Part shown: piece by piece, positions 5,501-22,845 of the stretch
Layout: the number at the start of each line of letters is the position of its first letter
How positions within the stretch are numbered: position 1 is the first letter of the stretch
From: Haliotis rubra
Lineage: Eukaryota
Assembly (NCBI RefSeq): GCF_003918875.1
Contig: NW_025766978.1
Span: forward strand, 248,001-312,000
Direction of reading: 5' to 3'
Length of the DNA: 64,000 nucleotides
Position numbers and translations under genes: made by a program
The notes under the pieces: model-generated
Told to the model about the DNA's origin: nothing
Seen by the model: only the letters and a program-made list of their open reading frames with translations
The model's database searches: none

Positions 5501-6005
5501 CTACATGTACGTTGTCAGGATATACAATTCCAAGATTAGCATGGTAGACTGGACGAAGTGATTTCTCCTTTTATTCTAGCTTTAAATCTTTGTTAGACAC
5601 AGAAAGATATGTCATAGAATTGTTTAGTCATAAAGATTCATTACGAATATTTTGTAAACTTAGTTTCTTGTCACACAATTCAAAGATTTGTAAATTAAGA
5701 TACGATAAGGATTTTGATACTGTGAGTGTTGTAGAAGATGAGTATCACATTGTATTAGTTTGTCCATATTATAAGCATCTAAGAGAGCAATTTATCTCTC
5801 AATATTATTTCACAAGTTCTACAAGGGTAAAATTGTGTCAATTGTTAACGTGTAACAATCCCTGTCATATAAAATATCTGTCCATATACTTGAAAACAAA
5901 CTTGCCAACATGAGCTGTCATGAGCACACTTTTGAAATGTACTTGCATGTGCTTTGGGCAATGAGGCCTTAGCACAGAATAAACTTGCCACTTGTCACTT
6001 GTCAC
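5501..6005 (+). mobile_element. 5'-truncated CR1-group (Zenon-like) LINE 3' end
   Basis: ORF 5590-5913 carries the C-terminal motif EDEYHIVLVCPYYKHLR; AATAAA followed by a (cttgtca)n tail; 12-bp TSD ttgatactgact at 5489-5500 and 6006-6017. Confidence 0.85.
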
Positions 6006-12530: not shown

Positions 12531-13044
12531 ATCTTACTCCAAACGACACATCCCTTCTTCATTGATAATTAGGCTGTTCCATTATTCTACAGGGCAAAAA
12601 ATCATTTCCTAAAGGCTGCCTACAATATTTTTGTTGGCAGTTTGGGATGTAGGCAGTTTGGAACTGTAGCCAGTATGGGCCCTAACCCCTCAACCATGCT
12701 GCACCGTAACAAGGAAAATCCCTCTCAATGTATTCTGACTTTGTATACAGTTATTGTTTTATCCCCGTATTTCCGGACGCAGGGCAGGTCAACAACAAGT
12801 ACCATTTTGTAACTTATTTCGGACCAATTTTCTGAGAAGAAGCCGTCCAGTATTCCAAAGAGGTGGTCAGTGATTGAAGAAGACAACAGAGTTTGTATCA
12901 CAGTTTGCTTTTCTAGTAGTATCTACACAAGGCGTGGGAATTGCGTCTGATTGTAAGACTGCTCAGTTATACCATGACCACATACATTACAGTTAACATG
13001 GTCATAACCACGTCATGCGGTCATTGGCTAGAGGATCATACACG

Positions 13045-14195
13045 TTACGAGTAAAGTGAAGTTCAGTACGTGTAAAGTGAACTTCATTATGTATAAAGTG
13101 AACTTTATTACGTATAAAGTGAACTTCATTACGTGTAAAGTGAACTTCATTACGTGTAAAGCGAACTTCATTACGTATAAAGTGAACTTCATTACGTGGA
13201 AAGTGAACTTCATTGCGTGTAAAGTGAACTTCATTATGGATAAAGTGAACTTCATTATGTATAAAGTGAACTTCATTACCTATAAAGTGAACTTCATTAC
13301 GTGTAAAGTGAACTTCATTGCCTGTAAAGCGAACTTCATTACGTATAAAGTGAACTTCATTACGTGGAAAGTGAACTTCATTAGGTGTAAAATGAACTTC
13401 ATTGTGTGTAAAGTGAACTTCATTACGTATAAAGTGAACTTCATTACGTGTAAAGTGAACTTCATTAGGTGTAAAATGAACTTCATTGTGTGTAAAGTGA
13501 ACTTCATTACGTATAAGTGAACTTCATTACGTGTAAACTTCATTACGTGCAAAGTGAACTTCATTATGTATAAAGTGAACTTTATTACGTATAAAGCGAA
13601 CTTCATTACGTATAAAGTGAACTTCATTACATGTAAAGTGAACTTCATTACGTGTAAAGTGAACTTCATTACGTGTAAAGTGAACTTCATTACGTATAAA
13701 GTGAACTTCATTACGTGTAAAGTGAACTTCATTACGTGTAAATTGAACTTCATTACGTGTAAAGTGAACTTCATTACGTGTAAAGTGAACTTCATTGACT
13801 TCATTACGTGTAAACTTCATTGCGTGCATAGTGAACTAAAGTGAACTTCATTACATGTAAAGTGAGCTTCATTGACTTCATTACGTGTAAAGTGAACTTC
13901 ATTACGTATAAAGTGAACTTCATTACGTATGAAGTGAACTTCATTCCGTGTAAACTTTATTGCGTGCAAAGTGAACTAAAGTGAACTTCATTACGTGTAA
14001 AGTGAACGTCATTACGTGTAAAGTGAACTCCATTACATGTAAACTTCATTACGTGCAAAGTGAACCAAAGTGAACTTCATTACGTGTAAAGTGAACGTCA
14101 TTACGTGTAAAGTGAACTCCATTACATGTAAACTTCATTACGTGCAAAGTGAACCAAAGTGAACTTCATTACGTGTAAAGTGAACGTCATTACGT
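13045..14195. repeat. Minisatellite, 21-bp unit
   Basis: aaagtgaacttcattacgtgt tandem; source of the KVNFITC / MKFTLHV ORFs. Confidence 0.95.
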
Positions 14196-14502
14196 GACTT
14201 TGACCAATAGGAATTCATATAGATGCATATAACCACACATATTTATTGTTATGACCGTTAACGAGTCATGAATTTAGTTTTACGGGTTAAATTCTACCTT
14301 CACACATAACTTACACACGGAAATCGGAAGTGACCGGAAGCGAACGAGTTTTCCGTATCGACGGGGCTGACAGGTGCTGACAAGGCGTAAAGCACATTTG
14401 AGTATAACTTTCATAATTGCAGTATGTGCAGTATAGTTTTCTGAACTGAAGGCACTACATCTTGATAACTATCCCCTTGCCAGTTGTCCGATATGCATTG
14501 AT

Positions 14503-14579
14503 GATAACGTTAGACCTCTTCGTTCTCGAGGTACCCTAGCCAGTTTACAGATCAACGTGATCGACACATTTCCACGGCT
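14503..14579 (+). pseudogene. Old Tc1 transposase relic, left half (interrupted by the LINE)
   Basis: DNVRPLRSRGTLASLQINVIDTFP continues in frame after the LINE as WLRRSPDRNHIAH, giving D-34-(E>A) spacing. Confidence 0.7.
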
Positions 14580-14638
14580 GGCACCCGTGAAGGGCCACCT
14601 CCTCGTGGTGGGTGCTGGGTCACGCTAAGAGCCCTTCA
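14580..14638 (+). ncRNA. HDV-like self-cleaving ribozyme at the LINE 5' end
   Basis: P1 GGCACCC(14580-86)/GGGTGCT(14610-16) with G1-U wobble; P2 TGAAGGGC(14588-95)/GCCCTTCA(14631-38); P3 ACC/GGT with loop TCCTCGT; P1.1 CC/GG; J4/2 GCTAA with the catalytic C at 14625. Confidence 0.85.
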
Positions 14639-15215
14639 ACCCCCGTTGTGGGCCCGGGGGATATTAGGTCCACCAACCCGTTTGCCGTGGGTTGCGCCCT
14701 GTGTCGGTGGAGGACGGGATTCTGGTGGTTGAGGGCAAGGGCTCCAGGAACAGCGTTCCTTTGCCCAATACACCACTTCGACCCTTACTTCACCTAGACG
14801 GGTGGTTGAACTGGCCCGGTTCAACCAATCGGCTGGTCACGTCATGCCCTGTGCATGGTAAATATATTATTTGCACATATACTTATTTTTGGGCTTTGGA
14901 TATTTTGATCCTCAATATACAAATTATTCTTATGTTGCATTGCCTAGAGTCCTATGCCAGAAGGCGGTGGCTCATGGGCCAATCTGGTGATGTTGACCGC
15001 TGAATTCTGTGTGTCTTTAGATTTTTGTTTTGGGCCGAACCAGCTTGACAACTGATCTATTTGACAAATATAGCTATTCATGTCATATTTGCTGGAGTAT
15101 GACACCCCTGTATCCCTGGTGTTAGCATCCTGGAGATCCGGTGCGAATCGACCCCGTCCTTGTTGACACTCCATGGTGGGTGGGGAACAGGGGTGTTGAA
15201 ACATTTCCTTTCATC

Positions 15216-16459
15216 ATGGCACTATTACATTCTGGTTCATCTCGTAGTGAGAAGAAAAAGGCGTTTTGAGGATTTTTAGATCCTTCAAATGGAAGCATTA
15301 CTCCAAACAATGATTCTTGGGCTCGATTTTTGTGTGATCGAGGCTGCTGATTTTTACCGATCAAGCTTAACCCATTCGCTGTTTCAAAGGCTATATCTGG
15401 GATTTGTGGTGAGGTTAACAACGTCACCCGGCTCCGTACTGGTTCACTTCTTGTGGACTGTGCACGGAAGCAGCAATCTCTAAATTTGTTATCGATCAAA
15501 ACATTTGCAAATGTTGAGGTTGCTGTGTCGGTGCACGGGACACTGAACTCTTAATCGAGGCATTGTTCGTGACGGGGCTCGTTGCCTGTCCGACATGTCT
15601 GAAGAGGAAATCAGTGCGGAGTTGAAGGAACAGGCGGTAACAGCAGTTAAACGCTTCACAATAAAGAAAGATGGTATTACCGTAAATACCAACACGTATC
15701 TCATGACATTTGCTCGTTCTACCCCTTCCAGCATCAATCAAAGCAGGTTATCTCAATATCGGGTGGAGGTGTATGTCCCGAATCCTCTCCGATGCTACAA
15801 ATGTCAACGATTCGGCCATGGTTCCAACTCATGTCGAAACTCTGTGGTTTGTTATCGTTGTGGTGACAACCACGAGGCACTGACTGCAAGAAAGACTTCA
15901 GATGCTGTAATTGCGATGGCACCCATGCCGCATCATCAAAATCTTGCCCTGTATGGCAACGAGAATCTAGCATCATGAAGGGTGAAATGCCATAATAACA
16001 TATCTTTACCTTGAGGGCAAAGAAGCTGTTTTACGACACAGTCAACAACTCCATCGATGATAACTTATTCTGCAGCAGTGTCTCGATCTATGACAACGTC
16101 ATCTGTATCTTGTCAAACCGACTTGACTTGGATCCGGACTGAACAACCTGTTGCTTCAGCCGCTCCACCAAAATCCCCAGTCACTCAGTCAACGTCTGCC
16201 TCTCAGACAGAGAGTCAGCCTGAGATACCCCTCACAGATGTCTATTAAAGCAGCCAGTTCCTATAAACTCAACAAAAGGAAAGCACAGAGGAAAAAACAG
16301 AATAGAAAAGAATCAATCACGATCCCTTCATCTCCAGAGGTTACTTTACAGAACTCCTTTGAATCTCTTGACATGGAGGTTACTCTGTCCTCCCAGGACA
16401 GGCGGAAGAATAGTTCTTCCTCACATTCACGTGAAAGATCGCCCGTTGAACCACCATGA
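15216..16459 (+). pseudogene. LINE ORF1 (gag-like nucleic-acid-binding protein), frameshifted
   Basis: KLNPFAVSKAISGICGEVNNVTRLRTGSLLVDC; YVPNPLRCYKCQRFGHGSNSC; CYRCGDNH zinc knuckles; stop overlaps the ORF2 start (ATGA, 16456-16459). Confidence 0.85.
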
Positions 16460-19400
16460 CACAGTTGTCACATATCCTGCAGTGGAATTGTAGAGGACTG
16501 AAAATAATTTCAGTGAAATGCAATTGCTGATACAGGACTTTCAGCCAGCAGCGTTATGTCTCCAAGAGACATATTTAAAACTACTGATGCCTTTACTTTG
16601 AGACAGACAGTACAGCGATTTTCATTCTTTTCTCCTCCGGGAGATCGAGGCAACTGGAGGCGCTTCTATTTTGGTTCACCAGAGCGTCATACACAGCCCT
16701 GTCACTCTAAATGCGAATCTTCAGAGCTGTTGCTGTGCGTCTCACTTTGCACATTGCTCTGACATTGTGCAGCTTGTATATCCCTCCTTCTTCAAATATT
16801 CAACAATCCGATCTTCAAAATCTGTTTGATCAACTTCCGAAGCCATGTCTCATCATGGGCGATCTGAACGGTCACAACCCGCTTTGGGGAAGTGACCATA
16901 TTAATACTAAAGGTAAAATCCTTGAGGAATTTATTTCCGATAATCACCTGTGTATATATAACGATGGTTCTCCCACTTATCTACATCCAGGTACGGGAAC
17001 ATATTCTTCCCTGGATCTGTCAATTGCCGACTCCAGCTTGTATAATGAATTTGAATGGTTGGTCCATGACGACCTATGTGGGAGTGATCACTTCCCCACC
17101 ATTCTCAAAACAGTCAACCCTGGTGATGATCCACCTTTATCGAGAAGGAACTTTGCCAGGGCTGACTGAATCATTATTGAGACTCTGTGTGCTGAACAAT
17201 TAACTCATGATCGGTTTAGCAACAGTGAAGATCCTATTCAGTTGTTTTCTGATATCCTTAATGGCATTGCTGACAGAACAATTACTCAGTCCTCTGCGGT
17301 TCCACATATTCGTAAACCATGGTTCAATAACGAATGTAAACAGGCCAGAAAGTGTAGGAAGAAAGCAGAAAATATTTTCGCCGACATCCTACTGTCCATA
17401 ATTTAGATAAATTTAAAATGTTAAATGCCAAGGCGCGACGCAGTTTTAAACAGAATAAGCGTCAGTCTTGGCGAAACTATGTTTCAAAATAAATTCTCGA
17501 ACACCGATGTCAAAGGTGTGGAACATGATCAAAGAATAAAGGGCAAAGGTTCCAAATCTACCGTTCATCATTTAAAGGACGGTGATAATTTGTTAACTGA
17601 TAAGGCTGACATTGCAAATAAGCTTGGTGAAACTCTCGCCAAACATTCGTCTTCGTCCAATTATGTCCCTGAGTTTCAAAAACATCAGAAACAACAGGAG
17701 AAGAAAGAATAAATTTTACATCAGACAATGGAGAAGACTACAATGAATTATTTTCAATGCATGAGTTACGTACTGCCCTTGAGCAAGCTCATGATACAGC
17801 AACAGGAGCTGATAATATACACTATCAGCTCTTGAAACATTTACCTGATTCATGTTTGGAAACACTTTTAAATATTTTTGATACAATATGGAGTTCAGGA
17901 AATTTTCCAACTTCGTGGCGTAAAGCCATAGTAGTACCTATACCAAAGCCTGGCCGGGATCATACAGATCCGTCTAATTACAGACCAATCTCTTTAACGA
18001 GCTGCGTCTGTAAAACCATGGAACGAATAGTAAATAATAGATTAACATGGTATCTTGAAACCAATCAGCTCATAACAAATATTCAATGTGGTTTCAGGAA
18101 AAATCGTAGTACCATTGATCATTTGGTACGTTTAGAATCCTTTGTAAAAATGCTATAATAAATAAACAACATGCAGTATCGATATTCTTTGATCTTGAGA
18201 AAGCATACGATACCACCTGGAAGCATGGCATTTTGAAGGATTTACATGATTTTGGTTTAAGGGGTCGTTTACCTCTTTTTATTCACAGTTTTTTTAACCG
18301 ACAGGCAATTTCAAGTCCGAGTGGGTTCAACCCTGTCTGACCATTACAATCAGGATCAGGGTGTCCCACAAGGCAGTATTTTGTCTGTCACTTTATTCAA
18401 CATTAAGATCAACAGTTTATCCAAGGTTTTAAACGATTCCATTGATGGATCACTTTTTGTGGATGATTTTAACATTTCTTGTCGCGGTAAGAATATGCAT
18501 ACTATTGAACGCCAACTGCAGTTGTGTTTAAATAAAATAAATAAATGGTGTCTTGAAAACGGCTTTAAATTTTCTAAATCAAAAACTAATTGTCTACACT
18601 TCTGTAGAAAATATAAGCCTCATAAAGACCCAGAACTGTTTTTAAATGGCACTCCCATCAAGGTTGTCAAAGAGGCCAAATTTTTGGGTCTGATTTTCGA
18701 CTCCCATTTAACCTTTCTTCCGCATATTAAATCCTAAAACTAAATGCCTGAAGGCACTCGATTTATTGAAAGTCGTGTCTAATTCAAGGTGGGAAGGGGA
18801 TCAAACTACGCTCCTACACCTTTACAGATCACTTGTCCGCTCGAAGCTTGATTATGGCTCCATCGTATATGGTGGAGCCTGCACAAGCAACTTAAAACTC
18901 TTAGATTCAGTCCACCATCAAGGTCTGAGACTTTGTCTTGGGTCTTTTAGAACTTCTCCTATTGATAGTCTCTATGTTGAGGCTGATGAGCCATCCCTTA
19001 CCCAACGTCGTATCAAACTCTCTTTACAGTATATAACAAAACTCTATTCTAACGAGTCTAATCCTGCATTTAACTGTGTTTTCAATCCTTCTTATGAGGA
19101 GTTGTACAACAAAAAGCCTTCTCTTGTTCCGCCTCTTGGTTTAAGAATTAAACCATTTCTTTCTGCTGCCGGCATTGAGCTGGAAAATATAGCTCCTTCC
19201 GTCTTCTTTCTTCTCCGCCTTGGCAATTGGTTTAGGCCACAAGTTGACCTAACATTAACTACATTTAAAAATCAGAAACAAATGAATTACAGTATAAACA
19301 AGAATTTAGTCAATTAAGAAATAAATATAATACATACAAATCCTTATTTACAGATGGGTCCAAGGATGGTGGCGCAGTGGCATGTGCCACTGTCATTGAA

Positions 19401-20142
19401 TCAGAACAATATCTTCTAGAATACCCGATAACAGCTCTATATTTACAGCAGAAACCAAACGCCATATTAACGGCTCTTAAATATATTCAAAGACATCCTA
19501 AACATAAACAGTACATAATCTTTTCCGATTCCTTTCATGTCTTCAGGCTATTAAAAATATTTCTTGTAAACATCCACTTTTATTAGACATTATTGAATTG
19601 TATAATGAGCTTGCTACTGGCCCAGTGCGACATCGTCTTTTGTTGGTTACCCAGCCACGTTGGCATTTCTGGGAATACCATGGCTGATCTTGCTGCCAAG
19701 GCAGCACTCAACAAATCTGTGACACCACTTCTTATTCCATACTCTGATTATAAAGCTGGCATTAGAACTTACATCCGTGATCTGATGCAGAAGAAGTGGG
19801 ACGCCCAAGTAGGTATTAATAAGTTACATGCAATAAAACCCTATATTGGTTACACCTACTTGGGTTGTCAGTCCAGATTTGAAGAGGTCATTATGCGAAG
19901 ATGTCGCATTGGCCATACCAGATATACTCATGAATATTTATTGAAAGGCGAAGATCCTCCGTTTTGTATCCCTTGTGATGAAAGGATCACAGTCAAGCAT
20001 GTCCTGATTGACTGCATTAGAATATTCCGTCACAAGGGATAAGTATTTTAATGTCAAAACATTGAAGGATCTTTTTAATAATGTTCGTTCTCATTTAGTT
20101 ATTGCCTTTTTAAAAGAATTAGATTTATTAACAGATTTGTAA
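16456..20142 (+). pseudogene. LINE ORF2 (AP endonuclease, reverse transcriptase, RNase H), frameshifted
   Basis: ILQWNCRGL; GDLNGHNPLWGS; SDHFP; NYRPISLTSC; QGVPQGSILS; FVDDF; FTDGSK; CWLPSHVGISGNTMAD; CIPC...TVKHVLIDC; split over many ORF-track pieces by single-base indels. Confidence 0.93.
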
Positions 20143-20694
20143 ATAGCTAAATATTTTATGATTGGAAGTTCAATTAGTAACACAGATTGTTAGTGGCTGT
20201 ATCCTCGAGGGGGGTTAAAGTACTGTAAAATTATTGTCCTCCCGAGAGGGTACATAAGTCCCAAAACATTCAAAGTACATTTCAACTTTCCATTTTTTAA
20301 TCGTAGAATATGTGTAATTTTAACGTATGGCTAGATTTATCTCAATTGCTAACAGCTGAAGGGATGATGTGAATCCAGCTAGGGCCCATGCAGGAAGCAA
20401 ATGTACTGTAAGTCCCCATGGTCTCTAGTATGGTGATCTAACTTCAGTTGTTAGCGATCTATAGCCCATTTTTATATTGTGTTGTCCCCTCTAGTTAAAA
20501 TGTTTTAGATTCAATTACTAGTTTTACATGTATATCTGTGATAATCTAGTTGTTTTACTGTCCTTCGTCGGCAGAATTTTATCATTTCACTTAAATTGTT
20601 GATAGATTTATAACTTGCTTTAGTCACGATATGGCTGAAATATTGCCGATGTGACTTAAAATCTTAACTCACTCACTCACTCATTTCCATGGCT

Positions 20695-20820
20695 CAGAAG
20701 GAGCCCCGATAGGAATCACATCGCACATCGTCGACGCCACGTTAGAGCTAAAGATCAGCCAGTTCAAAATCTGCAGGAATTGACGCAGGATCTGCACATG
20801 GAATGGCAGAGGATTGGCAG
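20695..20820 (+). pseudogene. Old Tc1 transposase relic, right half
   Basis: RRSPDRNHIAH...PVQNLQELTQDLHMEWQRI resembles SPDLNPIEH...PQNLQELxxALxxEWxxI. Confidence 0.65.
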
Positions 20821-20953
20821 AGGATTCAGAAGCTGAGAATTCGACGCTTGTTCGCCAGTATGAGGAGGAGTCTGGTGAGGCATGGCTACATCAGTTACTG
20901 ATGTGGTACCAGTGGTGGTTTATACAATCACAGCAATCATTATTTGAGAACTA

Positions 20954-22467
20954 TACTGAGCAGCAAAAAAACCCGTCAGTACGAATTCAAAATTAGATAG
21001 GCACTGTAATCAAATCATTACAGAAAATGACATAATAAGCGGATCAAAAACATTTCTTGTGTACAATATCTTGACACATCAATATATAACTCAGCAGCAT
21101 TTCAAGGCATTCCGTGAACGTTTGCACTCCATTCAGACTCTTGACTTCAATATCTAGTGTGACCACCACGAGCGGCAATAACTGCAGCACAGCGTCTATG
21201 GATGGAGTGCACCGATTGATGAAGGCCACTGGCACCTGGAACCACACTCTGAGAAAGGCCTGGCGCAAAATATTGGCTGTGTTCGGCTTTGGTATGACAT
21301 TATTCAGTCTCCTCTGAATTTCATCCCAGAGATGTTCAATTGGGTTTAAATCAGGACTAAGGGCTGGCCACTGCATAATGTTGAAGCAGATAACCATTGT
21401 AGCTCTGGCAGTATGGGCCCGGGCGTTATCATGCTTGAAAATGTTGTTCCGGTGACGTGCGACATGTGGTATGACGTGGGGTCTGAGAGCTTGATCGATG
21501 TAGCGCTCCGCTGTGATGCCGCCTCCTCTCCCTGGACCAAGGTTCTGGAACACCACAGGACCCACTCTCTGGTTCAGGCCTATTCCACCCCATACCATGA
21601 TGCTTGCACCTTCCCGTGAGTCTCTTTCCATAACACATTGGTCTGAGTAACGCTGGCCACGTCGTCGCCATATTCGTGTTCTGCCATCTGCAGTTGATAC
21701 GCGGTACTGACTCTCATCTGTGAACAGAACAGTTCCCCATTGCCTGTATCGCCAGTTTCGGTGTTGTAGGGCAAACTGTAGACGTTCACGCCGATGACGA
21801 TGGATAAGGACAGGTCCACGGTAAGGTCTACGGCAATGGAGGTTCCCGCTGTTAAGACGTCGGCGTACTGTATCAGTACTGATTGGTCTTCAGTGTGTTC
21901 CCACTGTCTGGCGTGCTGTTTCGGATGCCTACATGAAGGGATTCTGCACATGCTGTCGCACAACATGGCGGTCTTGTGGTCACCCTTGGTCTGCCAGTAC
22001 GGGGGCGATCATTTGTGGTGTTGGTGGCCTGGAAACGTTCCTGCAGCCTGTAGATGGTCCGAACGTTGACCTGGAAGTGATTGGCAACGGCTTGTGCAGT
22101 GTGGCCAGCTACAAGTCTTCCTAGCGCCTTGCTCCTCTGAGATGTCGTGAGTCGCGGCATCGTGCTGACGTTGTAATGTGAATGTCAACCAGGTTTCGGG
22201 GTGCAATTTATAGGGCTGGTCCTTGTGAACAGCACGTGCAGCATGAGTTGCATGAAAAACATAGAGAACACCGTACCATCTCCGAGATCAGGTTGCGTTT
22301 TTGAGACCATTTCCTGGGTTCCATTCCGAGTTTGGGAAGTCATGTCTTTGCTGAGGTAAAGTTGGAGATTTTGTCAAAAATATACAATCAAAAGCATTAA
22401 ATGAGTTTACAGTTATCCGTTTCTGCGACGGAAAATTCCAAACTGACGTTTCCTTTGCTGCTTAGTA
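20954..22467 (-). mobile_element. Near full-length Tc1-like DNA transposon with a degenerate transposase
   Basis: TIRs tactgagcagcaaaaaaacccgtcagt / actgacgtttcctttgctgcttagta with TA flanks; MPRLTTSQRSKALG...RPRTGRPRVTT; VLFTDES; MVWGGI; HDNARAH; WPALSPDLNPIEHLW, in shifted frames from 22160 to ~21150. Confidence 0.93.
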
Positions 22468-22601: not shown

Positions 22602-22845
22602 GTGAGTGAGTTTAGTTTTACGCCGCACTCAGCAATGTTCCAGCCATATGGCGGCGGCCTGTAAATAATCGGGTCTGGACCAGACAATCCAGTGATCAAC
22701 AGCACGAGCATCGATCTGCGCAATTGGGAACCGATGACATGTGTCAACCAAGTCAGCGAGCCTGACCACCCGATCCCGTTAGTCGCCTCTTACGACAAGC
22801 ATGGGCCACTGAAGATCAATATTCTAACCCGGACCTTCACGGGCA
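22602..22845 (-). mobile_element. SINE without a tRNA head, LINE-related tail
   Basis: 14-bp TSD catcagggattcga at 22588-22601 and 22846-22859; mollusc-type core catgcttgtcgtaagaggcgactaacgggatcgggtggtcagg; tail atatggctggaacattgctgagtgcggcgtaaaactaa(actc)n. Confidence 0.9.

Follow-up and report, generated by a model that had tools for sequence, protein, structure and literature searches.

The 59 nt at 14580..14638 (plus strand) of the window, by which we mean the whole stretch of DNA analysed (64,000 nt of Haliotis rubra NW_025766978.1, positions 248,001–312,000, forward strand), are very probably a DNA copy of an authentic self-cleaving ribozyme of the HDV-like (delta-like) class, minimal and P4-less in form, which defines the 5′ end of a LINE. 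This assignment comes from sequence comparison, using a fold script, a null model, covariation and a covariance model. More tentatively, and with slightly less than even confidence, the relatives of this LINE suggest an ancient lineage of molluscs and arachnids that carries a two-part 5′ cassette, made up of an HDV-like ribozyme and a covarying domain of ~190 nt, and within which the ribozyme has been miniaturised to the 59-nt P4-less form.

The predicted fold and its host element

Direct reading from 14580 gives the letters GGCACCC-G-TGAAGGGC-C-ACC-TCCTCGT-GGT-GGGTGCT-GG-GTCAC-GCTAAGA-GCCCTTCA. P1 is formed by GGCACCC (14580–14586) and GGGTGCT (14610–14616) with 7/7 bp paired, the first pair being G14580.U14616, and a J1/2 of 1 nt (G14587) leads into P2, in which TGAAGGGC (14588–14595) pairs with GCCCTTCA (14631–14638) over 8/8 bp. 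P3 (ACC at 14597–14599 with GGT at 14607–14609, 3/3 bp paired) closes L3 (TCCTCGT, 14600–14606, 7 nt and of the UCCUCGY type), and its 3′ strand runs straight into the 3′ strand of P1. The 2-bp P1.1 is made by C14601 and C14602 (L3 positions 2–3) with G14617 and G14618, the two G residues that follow P1. P4 is replaced by an unpaired-looking L4 of ~5 nt (GTCAC, 14619–14623), after which J4/2 (G-CTAA-GA, 14624–14630) is of the C-N-R-A type with C14625 at the catalytic position. Of the features by which HDV-like ribozymes are recognised, P1, P2, P3/L3, P1.1 and the J4/2 cytosine are thus all found in 14580–14638, and a P4 helix is absent from the abalone element, which has GTCAC only (14619–23). 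The predicted cut lies 5′ of G14580, the first base past the target-site duplication (TSD). A preliminary description of this DNA had proposed a full nested double pseudoknot, and both direct reading and the script found every coordinate to be correct; the ~5-nt P4 (GTCAC) and the 1-nt J1/2 that it gave can be read in the sequence. The letters of the ribozyme are unmutated in the window copy although the ORFs of the element are frameshifted.

The element itself is a 6.1-kb frameshifted LINE of the I superfamily (14580–20682, plus strand). A repeat match identified the 5′ copy of the TSD (ATTTCCACGGCT, 14568..14579, plus strand) from its 3′ copy (ATTTCCATGGCT, 20683..20694, plus strand), which adjoins the (ACTC)4 microsatellite tail that forms the 3′ end of the element (20667..20682, plus strand); in a repeat search the match was longer (14564–14579 vs 20679–20694) with 14/16 positions identical. 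As the base that follows the two TSD copies differs (G vs C), the 5′ boundary can be fixed at 14579/14580 without ambiguity, and the predicted cut site does fall on the TSD boundary, as had been claimed. All on the plus strand, the coding remnants comprise an ORF1 fragment with an RNA-binding region and CCHC knuckles (15595..15978; ORF1 is 400–457 aa long in intact relatives) and ORF2 fragments that encode an apurinic-type endonuclease (APE; 16711..17169, PF14529, 80.5 bits), a reverse transcriptase (RT) interrupted and spread over three frames (17757..19317, PF00078, 41.8 and 59.7 bits) and RNase H with a C-terminal Cys/His motif (19377..20042, weak PF00075 match). With its many frameshifts the window copy is a dead element. 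In L129, a better-preserved relative from H. rubra, PF03372/PF14529, PF00078 and PF00075 were all found, the last at 42.1 bits, a solid RNase H match in this relative. Between the window fragments and L129 the APE, RT and RNase H are accounted for, which bears out the two-ORF, RNase H-bearing element of the preliminary description. Neither self-BLAST nor a pattern search found further copies of the element inside the window.

This organization, an ORF1 with CCHC knuckles followed by an ORF2 with APE, RT and RNase H, is that of the I superfamily, and as judged from the sequence it fits the RNase H-bearing I/Nimb/Ingi/LOA/R1 group. Within that group Ingi is at least as likely as Nimb for the abalone LINE family; gastropods carry both Nimbus and much more numerous Ingi elements of the I superfamily (PMC11203168). 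In an ORF2 search the RT of the abalone family was 55–77% identical to very many proteins, including those of the molluscs Patella and Plakobranchus, of bins mislabelled as clam symbionts and of other assemblies. A 2A-like motif has been reported for some non-LTR retrotransposon clades, Ingi included; it was found in 0/379 proteins examined, a result with no bearing on the choice between Nimb and Ingi.

Public sequencing runs were examined as assembled contigs. In the DNA run X1 the summed depth rises from ~200 just upstream to >10^6 from 14580 onward, and one X1 contig matches 14380–14579 and then diverges; both observations support the 5′ boundary. Where a contig begins at 14580 (X27) or at G1, the first base of the element (L002, see below), the start may be an assembly break at the edge of a repeat and is therefore taken as evidence for the boundary only, and not for cleavage. 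Two RNA contigs of a related species (organism B: X16 record 10 and X25 record 16) run across the junction and continue upstream into unrelated sequence. These represent either uncleaved read-through RNA or carried-over DNA, and mean that not all is cut; the read-through transcripts postulated in the preliminary description thus have a counterpart in two RNA contigs that span the 5′ junction, with carried-over DNA as an alternative source. In contigs at least 85% alike, the only positions inside the ribozyme among the variants listed at 10% or more are 14621 (L4) and 14630 (the J4/2–P2 linker after CUAA), both of which are unpaired and non-core.

It should be noted that the summed X1 depth is itself uneven along the element, being ~10^6 over 14584–14855 and 14958–14991 vs ~2–7 × 10^3 at 15230–15380. 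This contrast may reflect only higher conservation among subfamilies, or could arise from abundant short non-autonomous derivatives that carry the 5′ cassette. The upstream flank (14380–14579) is moderately repeated in X1. On the other side of the element, the downstream flank (20695–21631, minus strand) holds a Tc1/mariner-like transposase remnant with an ORF at 21044–21631, its C-terminal motifs having been judged by eye. Elsewhere in the window, the head of a SINE at 22810–22845 reached only 1.1 bits (E 8) when searched without filters with the abalone ribozyme model; ARAGORN found no tRNA there and no relation to the LINE ribozyme was seen. AT-rich tandem units (...AAGTGAACTTCATTACGT...) at ~13040–13800, probably a satellite or minisatellite, gave spurious weak matches to miRNA/sRNA models on both strands.

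Relatives, covariation and the P4 series

An exhaustive search with the ORF1 fragment and a second one with a full ORF1 revealed a large and diverse annotated family in Haliotis rufescens, H. cracherodii, H. rubra and H. asinina, with remoter ORF1 members in Centruroides scorpions and other assemblies. Three of the relatives (L001, L124 and L126) are 67–72% identical to the 5′ kb of the window element; similarity starts at window base 14580, and the sequence upstream of G1 is unrelated between copies. The H. rubra copy L129 is the same as the window at ribozyme positions 5–61 and differs at the first four bases, so its 5′ end looks slightly altered or truncated. A covariance model built from seven copies recovered all seven at 79–91 bits, plus three decayed copies at 61–63 bits.

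In the alignment of the seven abalone copies 95.7% of cells were paired for the full pseudoknot vs 36–48% when the 3′ partners were slid by 1–3 columns, and 0/500 shuffles reached the observed pairing or covariation score. Double changes occur in four pairs, one in P1 and three in P2. At P1 position 6/32 a C-G pair has become U-A in the rufescens/cracherodii subfamily, while P2 positions 11/57, 12/56 and 14/54 are A-U, A-U and G-C in some copies vs G-C, C-G and A-U in others. P3/L3 is invariant in abalone and hence P3 gives no covariation information. The C at the catalytic position of J4/2 is invariant in 7/7 aligned copies and is followed by U or C, as C-N-R-A allows (J4/2 of L128 is of the CCAA type). 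In L127, which has an intact ORF1, the first G of P1.1 is replaced by A, giving a P1.1 mismatch.

Decayed extra copies of the ribozyme plus the downstream 5′UTR module (see below) lie at L129:17982–18253, L127:16002–16265 and L128:6188–6487, with P1, P2 or J4/2 broken; one decayed extra copy is without the 3′ strand of P2. Such decay is what neutral evolution should produce in dead insertions; the changes that separate live subfamilies are, by contrast, compensated.

Two remoter versions of the ribozyme were folded by hand. The first is on L002, a 3.8-kb JGI contig that encodes an ORF1 53% identical to the window ORF1 fragment and then ORF2, and that starts at G1 (GGGCCCG...). Its P1 (GGGCCCG/TGGGCCT) and P2 (TGATGTT/AACATCA) have letters wholly unlike those of abalone and yet are all paired; L3 is as in abalone, P1.1 has GG, J4/2 is CUAA, and there is a real P4 hairpin of 29 nt. 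The second version comes from Centruroides sculpturatus (L130–L136, about 5543–5640), where ORF1 is ~40% identical and six loci are alike only from one base onward. Here P1 is CCCCTCG/TGAGGGG, P2 is GTGGGT/GCCCAC, L3 is UGUCCGU, J4/2 is CUGA and the P4 hairpin is 44 nt long. In P1.1 the scorpion sequences show a double compensatory switch, CC/GG having been replaced by GU/AC (AC in J1/4 with GU at L3 positions 2–3). Their first P1 pair is C-G and not the canonical G.U. The Rfam models detected neither the L002 nor the scorpion ribozymes. As in both of them P1 lies one column off the abalone register with respect to P3 (7-bp P1 plus 2-bp P3), pairing across lineages was assessed sequence by sequence. 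An older scorpion copy, decayed by C-to-T changes, lies at L130:4258–4686. A further candidate, on L137, was set aside; its P1, P2 and P1.1 measure 6, 5 and 1 bp, and it is a single copy without boundary evidence that was not detected by Rfam.

Thus in three lineages with different helix letters the predicted cut falls at the first base of the element, and the claim that the ribozyme marks the exact 5′ end holds in every lineage examined. Covariation in other copies had been named in the preliminary description as a check of the fold, and double changes in P1/P2 were indeed found across the seven abalone copies, L002 and the scorpions. Taken as comparative evidence, these data support a ribozyme fold that is real and under selection. 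As a P4 hairpin is present in L002 and in the scorpions and only ~5 nt in abalone, the P4-less state is by parsimony derived in abalone, where the 5-nt P4 looks like a derived miniaturisation.

Downstream of the ribozyme lies a conserved and structured 5′UTR module of ~190 nt (14668..14860, plus strand) that ends in an invariant CAATCGGCTGGTC. The module is shared in sequence by abalone, L002 and scorpion (also at L129:9458–9651, L002:89–279 and L130:5629–5808). RNAalifold predicted 46 pairs in it, 14 of them with compensatory double changes, in the order hairpin, long multi-part stem, second hairpin and then an invariant CAAUCGGCUGGUC; no Rfam family matched the module. From the predicted structure it could be an element for translation or RNP assembly of the processed RNA. 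Conserved 5′UTR domains have been noted in Repbase elements (PMC5786205), to which the module may be related.

Proposed mechanism and alternative readings

If the LINE works as R2, RTE, Baggins/LOA and L1Tc do, its source copies would be transcribed inside longer RNAs, of the host or from read-through, in which the nested double pseudoknot would fold co-transcriptionally, and the J4/2 cytosine (C14625) together with a bound metal ion would catalyse scission 5′ of G1. The LINE RNA would be released with a 5′-OH at its exact first base, and full-length reverse transcription would copy the ribozyme into every new insertion. As compensatory changes have preserved the fold in related copies, the ribozyme very likely trims the element RNA to its exact 5′ end; catalysis and a role in retrotransposition we infer from the known systems named above.

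Some statistics speak for a fortuitous resemblance within a GC-rich 5′UTR. The Rfam model HDV-F-prausnitzii (RF02682) aligns end to end at 14580–14636 with 25.9 bits (E 0.18 for 10 kb × 4227 families), which does not reach the gathering score of 44; P2 is unscored by that model. The relative L001 scores 28.5 vs 44 with RF02682 and 25.0 vs 50 with RF00094. A loose descriptor has two other matches in the window, and the minimum-free-energy fold of the 61-mer is no stabler than shuffles (z 0.09), a test that is uninformative because pseudoknots are not modelled in it. A canonical descriptor (7-bp P1 with G.U, 3-bp P3, 7–8-nt L3, P1.1 at L3 positions 2–3, C-N-R-A and P2 of at least 6 bp) has exactly one match in the real window vs 0.27 per first-order-Markov random window, and when P2 is required to have at least 8 bp a match is found in only 1/60 random windows. 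The descriptor count alone is modest evidence, but the 0.27 applies to a match anywhere in a window and not at one given base, and since the sole match falls on a base set independently by the TSD, the probability of chance is negligible. Three helices covary across phyla, and in each lineage the motif coincides exactly with the element's first base; the comparative data have, as far as computation can, already refuted a chance origin.

A more serious possibility is that transcription initiates at G1 from an internal promoter, as happens in many LINEs of the I superfamily, and that the pseudoknot is a non-catalytic 5′ structure serving for example to bind the element's own proteins, to stop exonucleases or to act in an IRES-like manner. 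In L1Tc the first 77 nt act as promoter and ribozyme alike (PMC3383444), and binding of proteins and IRES-like functions are likewise described for R2-type ribozymes (PMC6765202); the adjoining conserved module could serve translation or protein binding, and the junction-crossing RNA contigs are uncut. We nevertheless regard initiation at G1 with a non-catalytic pseudoknot as unlikely. It does not predict that the first base is the predicted scissile position in three lineages with differing P1, the letters of the catalytic core (J4/2 C-N-R-A, L3 and the G.U pair) are kept besides the helices, and no Inr-like motif was recognised at +1 on reading of the sequence. It is also conceivable, but very unlikely, that an ancestral P4-bearing ribozyme was active and that the loss of P4 in abalone left a crippled relic carried along by retrotransposition. 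Such a relic would be in keeping with the presence of P4 in L002 and scorpion against 5 nt in all abalone copies, and with the P1.1 mismatch of the one intact-ORF1 abalone copy (L127). It is difficult to reconcile with the abalone subfamilies, which after the loss of P4 fixed compensatory P1/P2 changes and kept the catalytic-position C, or with the listed contig variants (at least 10%, contigs at least 85% alike), which touch the ribozyme only at 14621 and 14630. P4-less HDV-like ribozymes are moreover active in vitro (PMC10879173), and near-identical minimal cores with covarying P1/P2 occur in unrelated metagenome contigs.

If an active ribozyme within a two-part cassette is the correct reading, the known set of HDV-like ribozymes that free LINEs would be extended to an abundant molluscan and arachnid lineage of the I superfamily. 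Minimal HDV-like ribozymes, so far almost only from gut phages, would be placed in animal genomes, and the minimal drz architecture hitherto tied to phages would also evolve and thrive there, in very many copies. The natural series from P4-bearing to P4-less forms seen in one element family offers a way to study the in vivo contribution of P4. On the reading of a two-part cassette, the downstream domain would represent a new conserved RNA element of retrotransposons, acting for example in cap-independent translation or RNP assembly of 5′-OH RNA, and is a concrete candidate for how uncapped, ribozyme-processed LINE RNA gets translated or packaged. In genome annotation the motif marks full-length copies of the family to the base.

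Comparison with known HDV-like ribozymes

HDV-like ribozymes have been described at the 5′ ends of non-LTR elements in six clades, R1, R2, R4, RTE, Ingi (Ingi/L1Tc) and LOA (LOA/Baggins) (PMC5786205; PMC3774820; PMC3185411; PMC6765202), and reviews ascribe to them release from a co-transcript and IRES-like roles (PMC6765202; PMC3774820; PMC3185411). The abalone sequence resembles them in fold class, in placing the predicted scissile bond at the element's first base and in its presumed job, which would be release from a co-transcript, perhaps with an aid to translation of uncapped RNA. The hosts of the Ingi, LOA and R1 ribozymes are, like the abalone element, members of the broad RNase H-bearing I superfamily. 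Should the abalone family prove to be Ingi, its own clade would already contain such a ribozyme (L1Tc/ingi), which would make the find less novel but point to great antiquity. The abalone ribozyme differs from the known LINE ribozymes in its hosts (abalone, with mollusc and scorpion relatives), in the adjoining ~190-nt structured module and in size, the R2 ribozyme extending over ~184 nt from the start of its element (PMC6765202) and L1TcRz over 77 nt, as against 59 nt with a P4 of ~5 nt and a J1/2 of 1 nt in abalone. A literature search, which did not take in key papers of 2009–2011 and is no proof of novelty, found no link of HDV-like ribozymes to abalone, other molluscs, scorpions or Nimb.

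In drz-Agam-1-3 of Anopheles gambiae (bioRxiv 10.64898/2026.10.01.755752) P3/L3/P3′ (ACC-UCCUCGU-GGU) is identical to abalone letter for letter, and this core agrees with the Rfam HDV consensus as well. drz-Agam-1 further shares the G.U at the cut site, the 7-bp P1 and the GG of J1/4, and its J4/2 is CCAA as in the abalone copy L128, but it has a P4 hairpin of ~24 nt, a longer J1/2–P2 region and a total length of 87 nt. The Rfam drz-Agam model gave no match on the window at E values up to 10. In RF02682 and RF00094 it is P1, P3, L3 and J4/2 that can be aligned to abalone, with the 18 nt of P4 in the model cut to 4 nt, and the abalone scores of 25.9–28.5 bits fall short of the gathering scores (44 and 50).

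In form, the closest match is to the minimal HDV-like ribozymes (drz-Mtgn, theta), which are P4-less and ~50–60 nt long, share their core letters with the 59-nt abalone form and cleave in vitro (PMC10879173, which cites Riccitelli 2014). About 99% of theta/minimal drz ribozymes are confined to Caudoviricetes phages, often beside tRNAs, and none turned up when the genomes of human, mouse and protists were searched for minimal HDV-like ribozymes (PMC10879173). A pattern scan of metagenomes for the core returned 120 loci, about half of which fold in an HDV-like manner; as 0/120 carry the LINE downstream module they give support at the level of the class only. Among 26 distinct sequences with the core, P1 was 98.9% paired and there were 49 double-change cells. 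Near-identical minimal cores at L063:742–800 and 2912–2970, L069:510–570, L094:2180–2240 and L117:1021–1082 share the stretch GGGUAAC/GGGUCAU-GCYAA with abalone and score 40–50 bits with the abalone model, while their P1 and P2 are unrelated, paired and covarying. On L063, an AT-rich and eukaryote-looking contig, the two copies flank a SET-domain ORF. The preliminary description overstated its case in calling the abalone ribozyme unusually small, since P4-less forms have been described (PMC10879173) and the metagenome contigs include 19 minimal examples of 53–63 nt, among them those of the four contigs just named; at 59 nt it is small but not unprecedented. A phage genome with the cut site abutting the 3′ end of a tRNA is the setting looked for in this class, whereas the abalone ribozyme lies at the 5′ end of a TSD-flanked animal LINE, where the minimal form is apparently secondary, derived from a P4-bearing LINE ribozyme. 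What is new is thus the context, an animal LINE with apparent loss of P4 within its own lineage.
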